Virus record (IMG/VR): IMGVR_UViG_3300033995_001164
Coordinates: 186,001-250,000 of that record
Length of the DNA stretch: 64,000 nucleotides
Reading direction: 5' to 3' (one strand)
The first letter of the stretch is position 1; each line of letters opens with the position of its first letter. The notes beneath the pieces were generated by a model. That model ran no database searches. It was not told the origin of the DNA and saw only the letters and a list, made by a program, of their open reading frames with translations. The translations under genes and the position numbers were made by a program. Shown here in pieces: positions 27,028-59,920 of this stretch.

Positions 27028-27408
27028 TTAAAGTTTTAATTTTTTTAATTCATCACGAATTTCAATTGACCGTTCAAAGTTATGGTCTTTAATTGATTGT
27101 TTTAATTCTTCTTCAAGTTTAGAGATAGATTCTTGATTAGTTTCCATTTTTCTGATTTGGTCTCTAATCTCAACCGCTTTCTCAAAGTCTTCATTTTCGA
27201 TTGCCAACTCAAGTTGTCGTTTTAAACCATTACTACCTTTAGGTGTTTTTGGTTCTGAACTTCTATAGAATGAAGTCACTTTTATCGTACCATCTTCAGA
27301 TACTCTTGTTTCTGATTTCCATTCCCCTAACTGAGAAGAATCAAACTGAGAGAACATATTATCAAATTCTCTCAAAATGTCATTAAAATTTTTTCTGTTT
27401 CCAAACAT
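27028..27408 (-). CDS. Protein with two UvrB/UvrC (UVR) motifs
   Basis: LELAIENEDFEKAVEIRDQI and LKQSIKDHNFERSIEIRDEL. Confidence 0.85.
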   Translation of the reverse strand: MFGNRKNFNDILREFDNMFSQFDSSQLGEWKSETRVSEDGTIKVTSFYRSSEPKTPKGSNGLKRQLELAIENEDFEKAVEIRDQIRKMETNQESISKLEEELKQSIKDHNFERSIEIRDELKKLKL

Positions 27409-27578: not shown

Positions 27579-29594
27579 ATGAACGACTTAATGGACGACA
27601 ACGACAAATCAGGGAACAAAGCACAAAAACAAGCTATGGATACAAACACACCTGTATTAGACAACTTCAGTAGAGATTTAAATAAACTAGCTGAGGCGGG
27701 TAAATTAGACCCGGTTATTGGTAGAGATGCCGAGATTTTGAGAATCGCACAAATCCTTTCTCGTAGAAAAAAGAATAACCCTATTATCATAGGTGAACCC
27801 GGATGTGGTAAAACCGCATTGGTTGAAGGTTTGGCTATGAAAATTGTGAGTGGAGAATGTCCAAGAAACTTAGTGGACAAAAGAATCGTGAACCTTGATT
27901 TAACTTCAGTTGTTGCTGGTACAAAGTATCGTGGACAATTTGAGGAAAGAATGAAAGTGATTATCGAGGAACTTAGTGCTAATCCAAATATCATTGTGTT
28001 TATCGATGAGATTCACACATTGGTTGGTTCCGGTAATTCTTCAGGTTCAATGGATGGTTCAAACATCTTCAAACCGGCACTTGCCCGTGGAGAGGTTCAA
28101 TGTATTGGTGCGACAACTCTTGATGAGTTCCGTAAGAACATTGAGAAAGACGGAGCCTTGGAAAGAAGATTCCAAAAAGTAATTGTGGAGCCATCCACAG
28201 TTGAAGAAACAATCGAAATCCTTAAGAATGTTCGTGATAAATACGAATCATACCACAAAGTGTTGTATAGTGACGAAGTTGTGGAAACTTGTGTTAAGTT
28301 GGCTGACCGTTACATCACCGACCGTGAGTTCCCGGATAAAGCATTTGACATCTTAGATGAGGTTGGTGCTCGTATGCAAACCGAGATTAAAGTTCCTGAT
28401 GTTATTGAGGAATTAAAAAAGAAAGCCGCTGAGATTAAGATTGAAAAAATGGAAGTGGTTAAAAAACAAAACTACGAACAAGCAGCACAACTTAGAGATA
28501 AGGAGAAAAAGTTATTGATTAAACTTGAGGCGGAAAAAGATAAGTTTGCAAAACAAATGGATTTGGAGAAACAAACTATTGTTCTTGAAACCGTATATCA
28601 AGTTGTGTCAAGTATGACTAAAATCCCTGTGAGTAAAATGGATGCTGATGATTCCAAAGCGTTGATGAATTTAGATAAATCAATCATGGGTAAAGTGATT
28701 GGTCAGGATGCTGCTGTTGTTAAGATTGCAAAATCAATCAAGAGAAACCGTTTGGGTATCAAAGACCCTAACAGACCTATTGGTTCATTTATTTTCTTAG
28801 GTTCAACCGGTGTTGGTAAAACTCACTTGGCCAAACAATTAGCTAAAGAGATGTTTGGAACAGAAGATTCACTTATCCGTGTGGATATGTCAGAATACCA
28901 AGAGAAACACACCATCTCTAAATTGGTTGGAGCACCTCCGGGATATGTTGGTTACGAAGAAGGAGGTTTATTAACTGAGAAAGTTAAAAACAAACCATAT
29001 TCTGTAATCTTATTTGATGAGGTTGAAAAAGCTCACAAAGATGTTTTCACGGTATTACTTCAAATATTAGATGATGGACACGTAACCGATAGTTTAGGTA
29101 GAAAGATTAACTTCAAGAATACCTTAATCATCCTTACATCTAACTTAGGTGTTAAGAAATTACAAGACTTCGGTACTGGTATTGGATTCTCTAATAACTC
29201 TTACGCCGACGAAGAAGCTAAGAAAGAAATCTTGATGAAAGAGATGAAGAATTTCTTTTCTCCTGAGTTCATTAACCGTATTGATGACACTATTGTCTTT
29301 AATTCATTAACTCCTGAAGATATCGATAAAATCACCGATATTGAGTTAAAGAAATTAATGACTCGTCTTGGTGAGATGAAATACACCGTAACCTACGATG
29401 ATGAGGTTGTTAAATACCTATCTAAAATTGGATACGATGAAGTATATGGTGCAAGACCATTGAAGAGAGCAATCCAAGACAAAATTGAGGATTTGTTATC
29501 CGAAGAAGTATTAACCGGTAAAATGGTTGAGGGTAAATCCTACCAAATCAAAATGAAGGGTGAGGACATCACAATTCAGAAAAAAGGAAAATAA
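27579..29594 (+). CDS. clpC: ClpC-type AAA+ unfoldase lacking the N-terminal Clp-repeat domain
   Basis: GEPGCGKT/DEIH and GSTGVGKT/DEVEK ATPase modules, single UVR M-domain, TGIGF ClpP-docking loop. Confidence 0.9.
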   Translation: MNDLMDDNDKSGNKAQKQAMDTNTPVLDNFSRDLNKLAEAGKLDPVIGRDAEILRIAQILSRRKKNNPIIIGEPGCGKTALVEGLAMKIVSGECPRNLVDKRIVNLDLTSVVAGTKYRGQFEERMKVIIEELSANPNIIVFIDEIHTLVGSGNSSGSMDGSNIFKPALARGEVQCIGATTLDEFRKNIEKDGALERRFQKVIVEPSTVEETIEILKNVRDKYESYHKVLYSDEVVETCVKLADRYITDREFPDKAFDILDEVGARMQTEIKVPDVIEELKKKAAEIKIEKMEVVKKQNYEQAAQLRDKEKKLLIKLEAEKDKFAKQMDLEKQTIVLETVYQVVSSMTKIPVSKMDADDSKALMNLDKSIMGKVIGQDAAVVKIAKSIKRNRLGIKDPNRPIGSFIFLGSTGVGKTHLAKQLAKEMFGTEDSLIRVDMSEYQEKHTISKLVGAPPGYVGYEEGGLLTEKVKNKPYSVILFDEVEKAHKDVFTVLLQILDDGHVTDSLGRKINFKNTLIILTSNLGVKKLQDFGTGIGFSNNSYADEEAKKEILMKEMKNFFSPEFINRIDDTIVFNSLTPEDIDKITDIELKKLMTRLGEMKYTVTYDDEVVKYLSKIGYDEVYGARPLKRAIQDKIEDLLSEEVLTGKMVEGKSYQIKMKGEDITIQKKGK

Positions 29595-30025: not shown

Positions 30026-30868
30026 TTAGAAGAATCTGTGATTATATCTTGGAATCTCAACTACTTCTTTGTAGTGTAACTTATTCCCAAGTTTTTCAAT
30101 CATTTGTCTTCCCATTTCAATCCCTTTGAAAACATCCTCAATCACCACATATTCGTTTGGTGTGTGGTAATCGTAATACCCAATTGAAAAGTTGATACAA
30201 GAAAAACTAAATTTACTTCTCAACGCATAAACATCAGTATATGGATGAACCATGTATTGCATATCTTCGTTATGCATCCCTTCGGTTAATACTTGGTCAC
30301 AAACTTCAAAGAATTCTGACTCTCTATCAAATAAATCTTGACTGAAACATTTTTCGGTAATCATCCAGTTCTCCGGAGCGTCAAATTGAATTCCATAACC
30401 AACATTAGTGAAGAATTCAGGGTCAGCCTTTTTGGAACCGTGACATCCGGTTTCTTCAGATACAAAGAAAGTGGCTTTTAAATTTGGTAATTCTTTTAGT
30501 AATTTTAAACAAGCAAATACTCCACATTTATCATCACCACCGATTCCGGTTGGTAATCCATGTAAGTTGTAAGCTTTCAACGAATCTTTAATCTCACCTT
30601 GAGCATTAGGTAATTGTTCTTCATGAACTATTATATTGTCTAATCTGTGGACTGTGTCAGTATGTGCAATAACACAAGGGAAGTAAAAGTCCTCAGGAAG
30701 TGTTTCAAGTTCTTGTTTGGTTGCATAAACATTTTTGTGTTCATCAACATAATGTTCTATATTGTTTTCGGTCAACCAATTCTGTAAAAATTCAACCATT
30801 AGGTCTTCTTTATAAGTTACGGTTGGAACACTAAGAACTTCTTTTAGTAATAATATATCGTTTGTCAT
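30026..30868 (-). CDS. Zinc exopeptidase, M20/M28/M42 clan
   Basis: IAHTDTVH, GGDDKCG, EETGCHGS, YHTPNE metal-binding motifs. Confidence 0.85.
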   Translation of the reverse strand: MTNDILLLKEVLSVPTVTYKEDLMVEFLQNWLTENNIEHYVDEHKNVYATKQELETLPEDFYFPCVIAHTDTVHRLDNIIVHEEQLPNAQGEIKDSLKAYNLHGLPTGIGGDDKCGVFACLKLLKELPNLKATFFVSEETGCHGSKKADPEFFTNVGYGIQFDAPENWMITEKCFSQDLFDRESEFFEVCDQVLTEGMHNEDMQYMVHPYTDVYALRSKFSFSCINFSIGYYDYHTPNEYVVIEDVFKGIEMGRQMIEKLGNKLHYKEVVEIPRYNHRFF

Positions 30869-30885: not shown

Positions 30886-32025
30886 TTAATACATGTCATC
30901 CAAATTAAATAAGGTATTTTGATATAAAAAATTGTTAAATTCTTCTTCTTCCAATTCAAGTTTTTTAAATAATCCGGTATCTTTAGTTTTGACAATTAAT
31001 TTAACTGACATATTACCCGGATTAAACGATTCAATTTGAAAAATAATATTGTCGTCTTTAGGGGTTTCATACCAAGTTTTTAATTTATATTTAGATACAA
31101 CTCGGTTTCTAAATTCAACAAAGTCTTGAATTGTATATTCTTCGTCACTTTTTTCATCTAATTTTTCAATAATCTTTTCAAATTGTCTTGTAACCTCATT
31201 ATTAAATGATACTGAATCGAAATATTGTTCATCTTGAAACTCGTAAATTTTCTCATACCAACCACCAGGAGTTGACCCTCCAAAAGACTTATTTATTATT
31301 TTTGTAACAATCTCTTTGGCATTAGAATTAAATAAATTTAGTTGTAACGCACCCAAATATAAATCGGCAAGAGTGATTTCCACTTCATCCATATTGTAAT
31401 TAAGGTTAATACCATTTTCCTCTAACGGTTTATTAAATTCATCTTCGATTGCCTTTTTTGCGACAGTATTCATTTCGTGCTCTTTTTCAGATTGAAAATC
31501 CCCGAGGATATAATCAATTTCATTAGGAAATAAATCAAGTAACATTTCGGATAATTCTTGTCTGTATTCTTCACTCTCGAGATTAAATTCTTTTTCAGGT
31601 AATATTGTGGATGCGATGTCCTTAAGAGTTTCTTTATTCTCATCGTTCAATTCATAATACACATTGTACCCTTCTTTAAAATCTTGTTCTATTTGATATG
31701 AATCTTGAAAATCATATCCATTGTATGAATTAATAGCTTGCATGAACCAAACATCTGATTCGTCCATGTCAATTTCTTCTAAAAATTCTTTATCATCTTC
31801 AAATTTAATGGTTATAATAGATTGACCTAAAGGTTCCTTAGTTTGAATATAGTCTATAGTATTATCGATATTATATAACTCGTCAGTACTAATTCTACCT
31901 TTAGAAAAATTTCTAAGACCGACAACTAAGTTCTTATCTTCCTCTTTTTCAGTGTCTTGCTCTGTCTGTATGACCCTTCTGATAATATGATTAAGGTCTG
32001 ATTCAGTTAATTTTATTACTTTCAT
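30886..32025 (-). CDS. Leader-bearing acidic protein
   Basis: Likely start MKVIKLTESDLNHIIRRVIQTEQ at 32025. Confidence 0.55.
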   Translation of the reverse strand: MKVIKLTESDLNHIIRRVIQTEQDTEKEEDKNLVVGLRNFSKGRISTDELYNIDNTIDYIQTKEPLGQSIITIKFEDDKEFLEEIDMDESDVWFMQAINSYNGYDFQDSYQIEQDFKEGYNVYYELNDENKETLKDIASTILPEKEFNLESEEYRQELSEMLLDLFPNEIDYILGDFQSEKEHEMNTVAKKAIEDEFNKPLEENGINLNYNMDEVEITLADLYLGALQLNLFNSNAKEIVTKIINKSFGGSTPGGWYEKIYEFQDEQYFDSVSFNNEVTRQFEKIIEKLDEKSDEEYTIQDFVEFRNRVVSKYKLKTWYETPKDDNIIFQIESFNPGNMSVKLIVKTKDTGLFKKLELEEEEFNNFLYQNTLFNLDDMY

Positions 32026-32056
32026 TAAAATGATTTTACAATAAATACTTTTTTTG

Positions 32057-32087
32057 TTTGGAATTTCAATATTTATGTTTATCTTTG
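32057..32087 (+). promoter_or_regulatory. Bacteroidota sigma70-type promoter for tmRNA
   Basis: TTTG (32057-60), 19-nt spacer, TATCTTTG (32080-87). Confidence 0.75.
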
Positions 32088-32101
32088 TACCATAATAATA
32101 G

Positions 32102-32511
32102 GGGGATGAAATGGAATTGACTGACATATCTACTTATTTAGGGCACGTAGTGAGAAGTTTCCTATCACTTAAATCTATGGATGACAAAATTATAAATGGC
32201 AACATTTTAAACAAAATGGCTCTAGTAGGTCTTGTACGTCAAGATGAGCTTGTGAACGTAGCGTAAGCAAACACACATTGGGGTCGACGGATATATGTAC
32301 CTTGCAACAGAAATATCTTAAGGTGTGATACCACCCGAAGAGTGTCAAGGTCTCGTTTGAGGGTCTACCTATTAAAGTGAACCTCCCACAGTTGTAGGTA
32401 ATGATGGAAAAATTAAAACCTTCTTATTTGTCAGTTGAGAATTAATTGAATAAACGTGTAGACCTAAACACTTAGGATGGACAACACCCGATTTCGAAAT
32501 CGGCATCTCCA
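32102..32511 (+). ncRNA. ssrA: tmRNA; tag reading frame 32198-32266 encodes (A)GNILNKMALVGLVRQDELVNVA
   Basis: 5' GGGGATG pairs with 3' CATCTCC-A including the G3.U70 pair; GGAATTGAC D-loop; GGAC...TTCGAA T-arm; resume context ATAAAT-GGC. No encoded CCA. Confidence 0.9.
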
Positions 32512-32520
32512 CTTTAATAA

Positions 32521-32553
32521 AAAAAAAATCCATCATATGATGGATTTTTTTTT
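32521..32553 (+). terminator. Terminator after tmRNA
   Basis: AAAATCCATCAT-ATGATGGATTTT inverted repeat with T tract. Confidence 0.7.
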
Positions 32554-32616
32554 TATTAATTTTCTAAAATCATATCATTATATCCATTTTTTTTATTTAT
32601 ATTTGCAAGATAAAAT

Positions 32617-33351: not shown

Positions 33352-33765
33352 ATGGGTGAGAACAAAAAACCAAGAGTATATCATTCAAAAATATTAGAAG
33401 ATGTATTATCAAACATTACTCCGGAAGAGTTGGAATCAACTGAAATTGAAATGAGAAATATGGGGTATGAAGAGACCTATACCAATAAAGAAATTAGAAC
33501 TTGGTGGTTAAACCAAACTGAGGGAAGAAGACGAGATATGGTTCGGGAATACTTCAAAGGTGGTAATAGTGAAAGAATCAACACATTATACGGCATTATG
33601 CCGGAAGAAATGGAGGAAATATATAACATTAATGTTGATGTTATTATAATGGATTGGGAAGAAATCTTATTTGATTTTATAGATTTTTACCCGTGTCAAT
33701 TACCTGACGAATTATTTGAATGGTTGGATAATAATTACGAAATACCAAAGAAAAAAAATGGTTAA
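33352..33765 (+). CDS. Hypothetical protein
   Basis: Coupled ORF. Confidence 0.55.
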   Translation: MGENKKPRVYHSKILEDVLSNITPEELESTEIEMRNMGYEETYTNKEIRTWWLNQTEGRRRDMVREYFKGGNSERINTLYGIMPEEMEEIYNINVDVIIMDWEEILFDFIDFYPCQLPDELFEWLDNNYEIPKKKNG

Positions 33766-33865
33766 ATGTTATCAACATATTGATACCACATCTGATGAAT
33801 GGTGTTGGAAATGTCAGGGATTAACCGATAATGAGAGGTTTAATTCAACTAAAATAATAAATAAG

Positions 33866-34366
33866 ATGGAAAAGATTAAAATAATATTCCTTGATATCGA
33901 TGGAGTTCTTAATGTTTACTCCCACGACCACGATGAGTTTGGTAGTCAATTTCAACCCCAATTTGTTAATAACCTTAAACGAGTTATTGAAGAAACGGGT
34001 GCCAAGATTGTAATATCATCAACTTGGAGATATGGTGGATTACAGAGGATGAAAGATATGTGGGAAAAGAGGAACTTACCTGGTGAGGTGATTGATATCA
34101 CACCGGATTGTACTTACTTACATAATGAAGGTTTATTTGAATGGATAGATGAAGTTGAAAGAGGTCACGAAGTACAATATTGGTTGGATGAACATCCTGA
34201 AGTGGAAAGATATGTTATCTTAGATGATGATAACGATTTCTTACCCCACCAACGAGGTAATTTTGTTAGAACGGCAAACAATATCAATCATCCGGATGCG
34301 TTGGACATCGGATATGGATTAACGAATGAATGTACAAACAAATCAATTAGAATATTAAACGTGTAA
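33866..34366 (+). CDS. HAD-family phosphatase (Swiss-Army-Knife RNA-repair-like)
   Basis: IIFLDIDGVLN, IVISSTWR, RGHEVQYWL...YVILDDD. Confidence 0.85.
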   Translation: MEKIKIIFLDIDGVLNVYSHDHDEFGSQFQPQFVNNLKRVIEETGAKIVISSTWRYGGLQRMKDMWEKRNLPGEVIDITPDCTYLHNEGLFEWIDEVERGHEVQYWLDEHPEVERYVILDDDNDFLPHQRGNFVRTANNINHPDALDIGYGLTNECTNKSIRILNV

Positions 34367-41694: not shown

Positions 41695-41767
41695 TGGCCC
41701 CGGAGAATTACGATATCCCGACTTCTACATTATGAGTGTAGCACTCTAACCTCTGAGTTACGAGACC
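41695..41767 (-). tRNA. tRNA-Ile2 (CAT), atypical T-arm
   Basis: GGTCTCG/CGGGGCC-A; CTACA-CTCATAA-TGTAG; T-arm GGGAT-ATCGTAA-TTCTC. Confidence 0.75.
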
Positions 41768-43235: not shown

Positions 43236-43240
43236 AGTTG

Positions 43241-43316
43241 TTGATAAGGTGGGTTTCGAACCCACGGACTCTCGGCAGTTACCCACCGAGTGTTTCGCCA
43301 ACAAAACTTCTTACCA
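43241..43316 (-). ncRNA. tRNA-like RNA 1 with GNRA hairpin in place of the anticodon loop
   Basis: TGGTAAG/CTTATCA-A acceptor, GTTT/AAAC D-stem, GTGGG-TTCGAAA-CCCAC T-arm; central CTCGGTGG-GTAA-CTGCCGAG. Confidence 0.7.
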
Positions 43317-43624: not shown

Positions 43625-43698
43625 AGGTTCCTGTCAGAATCGAACTGACTCTATTCGGGGTTACAAAACCCGTGCACCACCTTTTATGCGTAGGAACC
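43625..43698 (-). tRNA. Atypical tRNA, tentatively Thr (TGT)
   Basis: GGTTCCT/AGGAACC-T; CGGG-TTTTGTAAC-CCCG (U31.C39 mismatch); canonical T-arm. Confidence 0.55.
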
Positions 43699-54829: not shown

Positions 54830-54967
54830 AATTAAAGGTAGGACTCGAACCTACGACCTGATTTCCTTTTCCACTTAGTTCGGTATTGGATGTGACTCCG
54901 TCCCTTATTCGTTGTTTTTCTCTTTCGAGTTAGGTATGTCTGTTCTAACCAACTGAACTACTTTAAT
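54830..54967 (-). ncRNA. tRNA-like RNA 6 (138 nt)
   Basis: ATTAAAG/CTTTAAT; TAGTTCAGTTGGTTAGAACA D-arm; AGGTC-GTAGG-TTCGAGT-CCTAC; about 80-nt purine-rich insert replaces the anticodon arm. Confidence 0.75.
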
Positions 54968-56250: not shown

Positions 56251-56321
56251 TACCTCGTGATGGTTACGCTCCACCGCCATTTGTATGTAAAACAAATACG
56301 CTCCTATTACGCCAACGAGGT
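56251..56321 (-). tRNA. tRNA-Val (TAC), non-canonical T-loop
   Basis: TTTGT-TTTACAT-ACAAA; GGTGG-AGCGTAA-CCATC. Confidence 0.8.
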
Positions 56322-59176: not shown

Positions 59177-59920
59177 ATGAACGTAGGACAAGAATTTCAA
59201 AATTATTACACAAAACATTTAGGTAAACCATCTTTGGATTTACATAACTTCAACAATCACATTCAAAACTCGATGACTCCATATATTTTAGAGGAAAGAG
59301 AGATGAGAGTAACTCAAATGGATATTTTTTCTCGTTTGATGATGGATAGAATTCTTTGGGCTTCGGGTCCGGTTGACGATAGAATGGGTGATATTATACA
59401 ATCACAACTTATCTTCTTAGATAATTTGGATAAGAAAAAAGATATCAATTTATATCTACAAACTCCGGGTGGTAGTGTATTAAGTGGTTTAGGTATTAGA
59501 GATACTATGAACTTCATCAATGCCGATGTTGCAACCACAAATATTGGTATGTGTGCGTCCATGGGTTCGGTATTACTATCTTCAGGGGCAAAAGGTAAAA
59601 GGGAATCTTTAATTTTTTCAAAGGTTATGACTCACATGGTGTCTCACGGAACACAAGGGAATGTTCAAGACACTAGAATTGGTCAACTTGAAGCTGAAAA
59701 ATATAACTACTTGTTATTTAAAATATTAGCTGAGAATTGTGGTAAAACATTTGAACAAATGTTAGAATCATCAAGAAATGACAAATGGTTTAATTCAGAT
59801 GAAGCGTTAGAGTTTGGATTAATTGATAAAATTATCGGTGTTGAGAAAAATCAATCAATGACTGATATGATGATTGGTTTTGATGAGTATTATGAGAAAG
59901 AAATTCTTAAAAGAAAATAA
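59177..59920 (+). CDS. clpP: ATP-dependent Clp protease proteolytic subunit
   Basis: DIFSRLMMDRI, TPGGSV, CASMGS (catalytic Ser), VMTH (His), RNDKWF (Asp). Confidence 0.92.
   Translation: MNVGQEFQNYYTKHLGKPSLDLHNFNNHIQNSMTPYILEEREMRVTQMDIFSRLMMDRILWASGPVDDRMGDIIQSQLIFLDNLDKKKDINLYLQTPGGSVLSGLGIRDTMNFINADVATTNIGMCASMGSVLLSSGAKGKRESLIFSKVMTHMVSHGTQGNVQDTRIGQLEAEKYNYLLFKILAENCGKTFEQMLESSRNDKWFNSDEALEFGLIDKIIGVEKNQSMTDMMIGFDEYYEKEILKRK

Follow-up and report, generated by a model that had tools for sequence, protein, structure and literature searches.

A conserved 21-22-residue tag in a tmRNA family of lake-water phages and its link to a ClpC-like unfoldase gene

Here, we present comparative sequence evidence that a phage genome from lake water carries a genuine one-piece tmRNA gene, and that the 22-residue tag encoded in this gene is under purifying selection along its full length and not at the C-terminus alone. 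On balance, we favor the interpretation that the tmRNA is functional and that its conserved tag is recognized as a specific signal, most probably by a phage-encoded ClpC-like unfoldase together with phage ClpP. What is new is a tmRNA family specific to phages, whose tag of 21-22 residues is conserved, whose T-loop has 6 nt in some members and which is stably linked to a ClpC-like gene; phage tmRNAs as such, SmpB in huge phages and long tags in general are already known.

The window, i.e., the whole stretch of 64,000 nucleotides that was analyzed, comprises bases 186001-250000 of an IMG/VR virus record of 309,177 bp from lake water that CheckV rates as complete. The phage setting assumed in an earlier sequence-only reading of this DNA was correct. 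Positions given below are those of the window unless stated otherwise, and the main features are compiled in Table 1. The phage has a GC content of 31.6%, and near-complete copies of its DNA were present in 18 lake-water metagenome runs. BLAST searches of a deposited-phage collection with the tmRNA and the 20 kb around it gave no match. The minus strand bears an array of at least 25 tRNA genes from 41.6 to 56.7 kb. Three further Rfam tRNA matches that ARAGORN did not list (41695-41767, 43625-43698 and 56251-56321, minus strand) extend this array to at least 26-27 genes. The tRNA at 43240-43316 (minus strand) has an enlarged anticodon loop, for which ARAGORN proposes a four-base anticodon (gtaa) or, when introns are permitted, a tRNA-Val(aac) into which 3 nt are inserted; this may be a tRNA resembling frameshift suppressors, or else a mis-call. 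A 138-nt Rfam tRNA match at 54830-54967 (minus strand) is modeled by ARAGORN, when introns are permitted, as a tRNA-Leu(taa) whose anticodon loop contains 50 inserted nt.

Table 1. Positions of the tmRNA gene, its parts and the associated genes (window positions, except SmpB)
Feature	Position	Strand	Basis and remarks
UVR protein, 126 aa, two UVR motifs	27028-27408	-	Pfam UVR 1.1e-14; found in 18 loci
ClpC-type double-ring AAA+ unfoldase without N-terminal domain	27579-29594	+	Pfam AAA, AAA_lid_9, AAA_2, ClpB_D2-small
M20/M42-family peptidase-like protein	30026-30868	-	Pfam Peptidase_M20 24.8 bits, just over cut-off; PHROG 4191 'peptidase' 3.7e-31
p413, probably 379 aa from ATG 32025	30886-32025	-	divergent, beside tmRNA promoter
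Bacteroidota-type promoter candidate	32057-32087	+	TTTG (32057-60), 19 nt, TATCTTTG (32080-87)
One-piece tmRNA gene	32102-32514	+	RF00023 50.6 bits, model positions 1-374
Pseudoknot PK1	32149-32185	+	crossing P3/P4 helices
Tag frame	32198-32266	+	GGC resume codon, 22 codons (GNILNKMALVGLVRQDELVNVA), last codon GCG 32261-32263, TAA 32264-32266
T-arm	32488-32503	+	CCGAU (32488-92), UUCGAA loop (32493-98), AUCGG (32499-503)
Intrinsic terminator hairpin	32515-32558	+	directly 3' of tmRNA; equivalents behind relatives' tmRNAs
Phage ClpP	59177-59920	+	PF00574 172 bits; Ser/His/Asp contexts conserved
SmpB	genome 23555-23968	-	161 bits, above NCBIfam equivalog cut-offs; basic C-terminal tail

The tmRNA gene, its relatives and its RNA architecture

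The tmRNA is covered over its full length by RF00023, at a score barely over the gathering cut-off of 47 bits. ARAGORN made no tmRNA call on the window, on a sub-window or on eight extracted relatives. Because the same program read 50 of the 51 bacterial tmRNAs that we extracted for comparison, its silence represents a blind spot of the tool and not absence of the gene. Homologues were recovered by way of neighbor proteins, by Rfam searches of related large contigs and with a family-specific DNA pattern, yielding 92 complete homologues on about 90 IMG/VR contigs, among them 45 unique sequences. The pattern matched 89 times in IMG/VR. It also matched 11 times in 185,579 species genomes, and all of these matches were chance occurrences without tmRNA context (by our own estimate from the information content of the pattern, about 20 were to be expected). 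As far as searched, the family is limited to lake-water jumbo phages with Bacteroidota-like promoters. RF00023 scores of relatives were 68 and 45.6 bits. The lower score, obtained for L039 (G002:293685-294081), lies under the cut-off, so that annotation with Rfam, like that with ARAGORN, would overlook some members.

The family is mosaic, with types of tRNA-like domain, tag types and downstream modules reshuffled among its members (L011, L024, L037, L039 and others). A given tag is combined with several tRNA-like domains and pseudoknot modules, and a given domain or module with several tags, which points to recombination within the gene among co-occurring phages. The relative G001 was considered as a natural example without a tmRNA and was rejected, as its contig starts inside the tmRNA. 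Contigs of the family were also found in four freshwater metatranscriptome assemblies. Two of these contigs, 419 and 389 nt long, project to approximately 32089-32509 and 32123-32513, are nearly coextensive with the predicted tmRNA and carry a GNV-type variant of the tag; as assembled contigs of close variants, they attest to presence in RNA libraries and not to transcription, transcript ends or levels.

Both halves of the tRNA-like domain are present and supported by compensatory changes among the 45 unique homologues. The 7-bp acceptor stem pairs GGGGAUG (32102-08) with CAUCUCC (32504-10) and shows double changes at four of its seven pairs. Included in this stem is G3:U70, the alanine identity pair, which is invariant in all 45 unique sequences while the adjoining pairs vary. 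The discriminator A at 32511 is followed by CUU; hence CCA is not encoded by the window tmRNA, as it is by about half of the family. All five pairs of the T-stem show double changes. A 7-nt T-loop is usual for tmRNAs, though not strictly defining, and the 6-nt loop that had already been remarked on from the sequence alone is real: UUCGAA, one nucleotide short of the canonical length, sits in the relatives on five differently compensated 5-bp stems whose closing pair covaries between U-A and C-G. The short loop is thus a genuine trait of one sub-lineage; the T-loop of the other family lineages has 7 nt. In this particular genome, the 6-nt T-loop and the lack of an encoded CCA might make the RNA less functional, although close relatives with the same tag as the window have 7-nt T-loops and an encoded CCA.

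The remainder of the molecule likewise follows the bacterial one-piece plan. In PK1, helix P3 joins AGUGA (32149-53) to UCACU (32165-69), a pairing also recovered by a column scan, and helix P4 joins GUUUCC (32157-62) to GGA(U)GAC (32179-85). The crossing of P3 and P4 is retained in 30 of 30 distinct PK1 variants, many of them compensated. PK1 is followed by the 12-nt spacer AAAAUUAUAAAU, which bears U(-5)A(-4), as U85/A86 in E. coli; across the family, 10-14 nt separate PK1 from the resume codon in homologous register. The 45 sequences retain the PK1 stem as well as the P2 core GCACGU/ACGUGU, P2 with compensatory changes. Further downstream, one PK2 stem (GGGU/ACCU) has support, and the rest of the PK2-PK4 region is module-variable and poorly aligned by Rfam. 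RNAalifold recovered nested helices only, and the single-sequence fold z-score of -1.0 is uninformative for a pseudoknotted RNA. Bacterial one-piece tmRNAs that act with SmpB (RF00023) share with the phage RNA the acceptor stem with G3:U70, the T-arm, the long P2, PK1, the approximately 12-nt spacer bearing U(-5)A(-4), an internal tag frame closed by a stop codon, additional helices 3' of it and a matching SmpB.

A distance of 14 nt separates the promoter candidate, whose element TATCTTTG is also present upstream of the relatives' tmRNAs, from the mature 5' end; this suggests a short leader that would be removed by RNase P. Two open reading frames are traps for gene calling at this locus. The longest frame of p413 (413 codons, 30886-32127, minus strand) extends across the promoter and the 5' end of the tmRNA, and an ATG-initiated frame of 51 codons (32111-32266, plus strand), open in the window genome, passes along the tmRNA and joins the tag frame. 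At 33716-34366 (plus strand), 1.2 kb 3' of the tmRNA, an ORF matches HAD_SAK_2 (6e-29), the HAD domain of 'Swiss Army Knife' RNA-repair proteins, which hints at a neighborhood of RNA repair or translation maintenance.

Reading frame of the tag and comparison with Bacteroidota tmRNAs

The sequence-only reading had predicted a tmRNA with a 22-residue tag ending in -NVA, and had named ARAGORN and Infernal as means to check its frame. The prediction was exact. Rfam places its consensus resume codon on GGC 32198-32200, ARAGORN being silent here as elsewhere in the family, and the 45 unique homologues keep the frame. They encode 19 distinct tags, all of 21-22 residues, in the same frame and beginning with GN. 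With the alanine of the charged tmRNA counted, a predicted 23 residues would be appended. The triplet before the resume codon is GAC, AAC, AAT, ATT or TAC among the homologues. The tags end mostly in VA, otherwise in AA, TA or TI; the window tag ends in V-N-V-A, and residue 22 is alanine in 18 and residue 21 valine in 15 of the 19 tags.

Four reading-frame properties show that the peptide is what is conserved. First, among 28 distinct tag-coding DNAs, extra bases at codon positions 1, 2 and 3 number 20, 13 and 38. Second, synonymous switches are common, e.g., between TTA, CTA, CTT and TTG for leucine and between CGT, CGC and AGA for arginine; this pattern and the third-position variation indicate selection on the peptide and not on RNA pairing. 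Third, stop codons interrupt frame +1 in 28 of 28 variants and frame +2 in 26 of 28. Fourth, the pooled dN/dS of the tag is 0.28, with G1, N2 and G11 invariant and about ten more positions nearly so.

These data bear on two alternative explanations. The first holds that the locus is not a working tmRNA with this tag, and that it represents a 51-codon protein gene starting at ATG 32111, a fragment left by ssrA integration, a decaying captured host gene or a tmRNA with another resume point (+1, GCA ACA UUU UAA, i.e., ATF). It could draw on the missing ARAGORN call, the marginal Rfam score, the open ATG-frame in the window, the 6-nt T-loop and the lack of an encoded CCA. Yet the RNA is of full length with compensated helices, the family is kept across diverged phages and no near relative was found in the cellular genomes searched. 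Frame +1, although closed in all variants, is not conserved in content. The frame 5' of the resume codon is closed by in-frame stops in 36 of the 45 relatives, so that the 51-codon ATG-frame is an accident of the window genome and was rejected as a small protein. We consider this explanation extremely improbable and in effect refuted by the compensated helices, the codon pattern and the closed upstream frame.

According to the second explanation, the tmRNA mainly frees ribosomes during infection, and the tag is no degron and is conserved for the structure of the mRNA-like domain, for peptide release or for marking or localizing proteins. Release, and not tagging, is generally regarded as the essential part of trans-translation in several bacteria (PMC9601184). 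Conservation for RNA structure is at odds with the third-position variation and synonymous switches described above, however, and the hydrophobic, alanine-terminal end is a hallmark of degradation tags (PMC4131195). The location of the gene in a protease block (see below) also speaks against a mere release function, and we judge this explanation to be improbable.

For comparison with cellular tmRNAs, we sampled 151 genomes of the GTDB phylum Bacteroidota and extracted 51 tmRNAs, for 50 of which ARAGORN reported a tag. The tmRNAs of the sample score 93-198 bits with RF00023, as against 50.6 bits for the phage gene. The tags read have 8-10 residues (15 in one case) and all end in LAA or MAA, in keeping with the earlier statement that typical tags comprise about ten residues with an LAA end, and their T-loop has 7 nt in 49 of 50, the remaining one being unparsed. 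The phage family is set apart by its tags of 21-22 residues ending in -VA, -TA, -TI or -AA, by the 6-nt T-loop of one sub-lineage and by the phage-borne location of the gene in a ClpC-peptidase block. Shared with some Bacteroidota are the GGC resume codon (15 of 50) and the GN- start of the tag (4 of 50). The description of the resume context as Bacteroidota-like was fair, given that TAAAT precedes the resume codon in a TAAAT-GGC-type context in 6 of 50; U(-5)A(-4), however, is a general feature of tmRNAs. A profile of the phage family matches the Bacteroidota tmRNAs only in the universal 3' part, with at most 30 bits, which argues that the phage gene is not a recent capture from any of the sampled lineages.

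The host phylum is likely Bacteroidota, on the basis of promoter-motif enrichment. Genome-wide, TAnnTTTG occurs upstream of 65 of 372 crudely called genes, as compared to a mean of 21 and a maximum of 33 in shuffled sequences. The bipartite motif TTTG-N17-21-TAnnTTTG, which we take to be a Bacteroidota-type promoter, was found upstream of genes 30 times in sense and 6 times in antisense orientation.

Partner genes and the conserved block upstream of the tmRNA

The phage encodes candidates for the main protein partners of a tmRNA. In 11 of 32 relatives, the gene for SmpB lies within about 0.4-1 kb 3' of the tmRNA (e.g., G002:293685-294950). In the window genome (G000), SmpB maps to 23.5 kb, as against 218 kb for the tmRNA, and an unrelated gene of 243 aa occupies the place of SmpB. 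Phage ClpP has an intact catalytic triad (GMCASMG, MTHMV and RNDKW, aligned to 1y7o) and is present in five of five large relatives. Its gene is located 27 kb from the tmRNA, outside the conserved block. The combination of tmRNA, SmpB and ClpP was found in three complete relatives.

The ClpC-like protein has two AAA+ rings, a short ClpC-type M-domain and a ClpP-docking loop. Its best match among solved structures is ClpC 6em8 (742 bits, residues 8-663 of the phage protein on residues 144-800 of the chain), and its GIGF loop aligns, with an offset of one residue, to the AGF loop of 6em8. It thereby resembles the ClpC of the ClpC-ClpP systems of Firmicutes and Actinobacteria (6em8, 3j3s, 8a8u) in the D1/short M-domain/D2 layout, the end-to-end alignment and the (I/V/A)GF loop, and differs from them in the lack of the N-terminal domain. 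Pfam gave no match to Clp_N in this protein and the alignment begins only at ClpC residue 144, which is why we call it ClpC-like and not ClpC. The N-domain of known ClpC binds adaptors such as MecA, and phospho-arginine. The phage protein falls short of the NCBIfam equivalog cut-offs for ClpA and ClpB. It is the sole AAA_2 protein and thus the single Hsp100-type ATPase of the genome. Encoded beside it is the UVR protein, which is weakly similar to the C-terminus of McsA (41.5 bits with NCBIfam McsA, cut-off 210) and might regulate the unfoldase or act as its adaptor. An SspB-like adaptor was sought in the genome and not found.

Synteny was assessed for 29 unique tmRNAs with an upstream flank of at least 5.5 kb. 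In all 29, a ClpC-like gene precedes the tmRNA in the same orientation at a distance of 2-5 kb, and an M20-type peptidase gene is also present upstream; p413 is present in 27 of the 29. The block, in the order ClpC-like gene, M20 peptidase, p413 and tmRNA, is kept despite considerable divergence of its proteins, with identities of about 50-70% for the ClpC-like protein, 62% for the M20 peptidase and 25% for p413. No match to p413 was found in Pfam, NCBIfam, PHROG or Atlas, and its structural model, although confident (pLDDT 86.6), gave no fold match, the best Foldseek E of 0.02 and the best VIA Z of 5.0 being within noise.

An earlier suggestion was that the tag may route rescued proteins to the phage's own Clp system. 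The components that this suggestion presupposes are there, i.e., a ClpP with intact triad and an unfoldase with a GIGF loop that is linked to the tmRNA in every assessable relative, and this lends the suggestion genuine though indirect support. A coupling of tag and unfoldase did not emerge, as the type of tag does not co-vary with the divergence of the ClpC-like protein: ClpC-like proteins 96-100% identical to that of the window are paired with tags of the type GNILNK...VNVA in some phages and GNVLDKLSAVGFIRTEEVAVA in others. That tagged proteins are routed to the phage ClpC-like protein and ClpP is a suggestion that draws on synteny and on the analogy with Mollicutes discussed below. The further suggestion that the tag escapes host ClpXP found no support in the sequences.

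Possible readers of the tag and biological meaning

Phage-encoded tmRNAs have been described from huge phages (PMC7162821) and from mycobacteriophages and Bacillus phage G (PMC4131195), and a two-piece tmRNA is known from Melnitz-like phages (PMC9004378). Like the huge phages (PMC7162821), the phage studied here has its own ssrA together with SmpB and many tRNAs. Unlike the described phage tmRNAs, for which surveys relied on ARAGORN, no tested member of the present family is detected by this program. In a limited literature search, we found no earlier analysis of a conserved long phage tag or of a fixed linkage between tmRNA and ClpC. Tags usually end in di-alanine (PMC9601184), an end that only 2 of the 19 phage tags have (-VAA-like).

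The best precedent for a long tag that signifies a different reader comes from the Mollicutes (Mesoplasma/Mycoplasma), whose longer ssrA tag is read by Lon (PMC9382460). As in the phage family, this tag is much longer than that of E. coli, and there it evolved with a change of the reading protease (PMC9382460). In contrast to the phage setting, the organism concerned lacks ClpXP and its tag has an aromatic-rich end (...NYAFA), whereas the phage tag ends in V-x-V-A and its candidate reader would be ClpC-ClpP, with a link that is purely genomic.

We infer the following course of events for the phage tmRNA, from its charging and its work with the phage SmpB to tagging in vivo, a degron role of the tag and the identity of the protease. 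The RNA would be transcribed from its own promoter to the intrinsic terminator and then be processed at its 5' end, and the CCA end of the window tmRNA would be supplied by a CCA-adding enzyme. Charging with alanine would proceed through G3:U70, and phage SmpB would deliver the charged tmRNA to stalled ribosomes. Translation would resume at GGC 32198, add alanine and the 22 residues of GNILNKMALVGLVRQDELVNVA and terminate normally at the TAA codon. Purifying selection along the whole tag suggests that it is recognized as a specific signal. Its reader would most likely be the N-domain-less ClpC-type unfoldase with phage ClpP, and the M20 peptidase of the block may help to convert the products into amino acids.

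It is tempting to go one step further and propose an orthogonal tag-and-destroy system, in which the tag added by phage tmRNA and SmpB would be read specifically by the N-domain-less ClpC-ClpP and the M20 peptidase would finish degradation. Stalled chains on damaged host messages might in this way be recycled to amino acids for the phage, independent of, and perhaps invisible to, host proteases. Such a private reader is a tentative proposal that we regard as possible but doubtful, as three points speak against it, namely the non-polar, alanine-terminal end of the tag, the routine employment of -LVA tags for degradation in E. coli (PMC9382460) and the missing co-variation between tag type and ClpC-like protein. 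The phage Clp genes may serve other purposes.

The same three points speak for the alternative that host proteases (ClpXP, Lon, FtsH or a periplasmic tail-specific protease) are the readers of the tag. The ClpC-like protein and ClpP would then have unrelated tasks, and the synteny would reflect a shared expression block for 'protein turnover and translation'. Host ClpXP and other proteases accept C-termini of this type, which in two relatives end in -AA. In E. coli, variants of its own tag that end in -LVA serve as standard tags for degradation (PMC9382460). The location of ClpP outside the block also fits reading by the host. A tag made for host proteases would, however, be expected to resemble the host tag, whereas the phage tag is twice as long and conserved throughout, down to its three invariant residues. 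In addition, the ClpC-like gene has stayed linked to the tmRNA in all assessable relatives although its product has diverged considerably. We therefore regard reading of the tag by the host as rather unlikely, and retain recognition by the phage ClpC-like unfoldase and ClpP as the preferred interpretation.

Phage-borne tmRNAs are usually regarded as copies of a host function. The tag of the present family has diverged far from the likely host type, is maintained by selection on the peptide in numerous phages and is physically linked to the gene of a phage unfoldase. Since ARAGORN, which was used in published surveys, misses the family and the Rfam cut-off excludes some of its members, current counts of phage tmRNAs are likely underestimates. 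If a phage protease reads the tag, this would represent the second natural case of a joint change of tag and protease, after that of Mollicutes and Lon, and would offer a ready-made orthogonal pair of degron and protease for synthetic biology.
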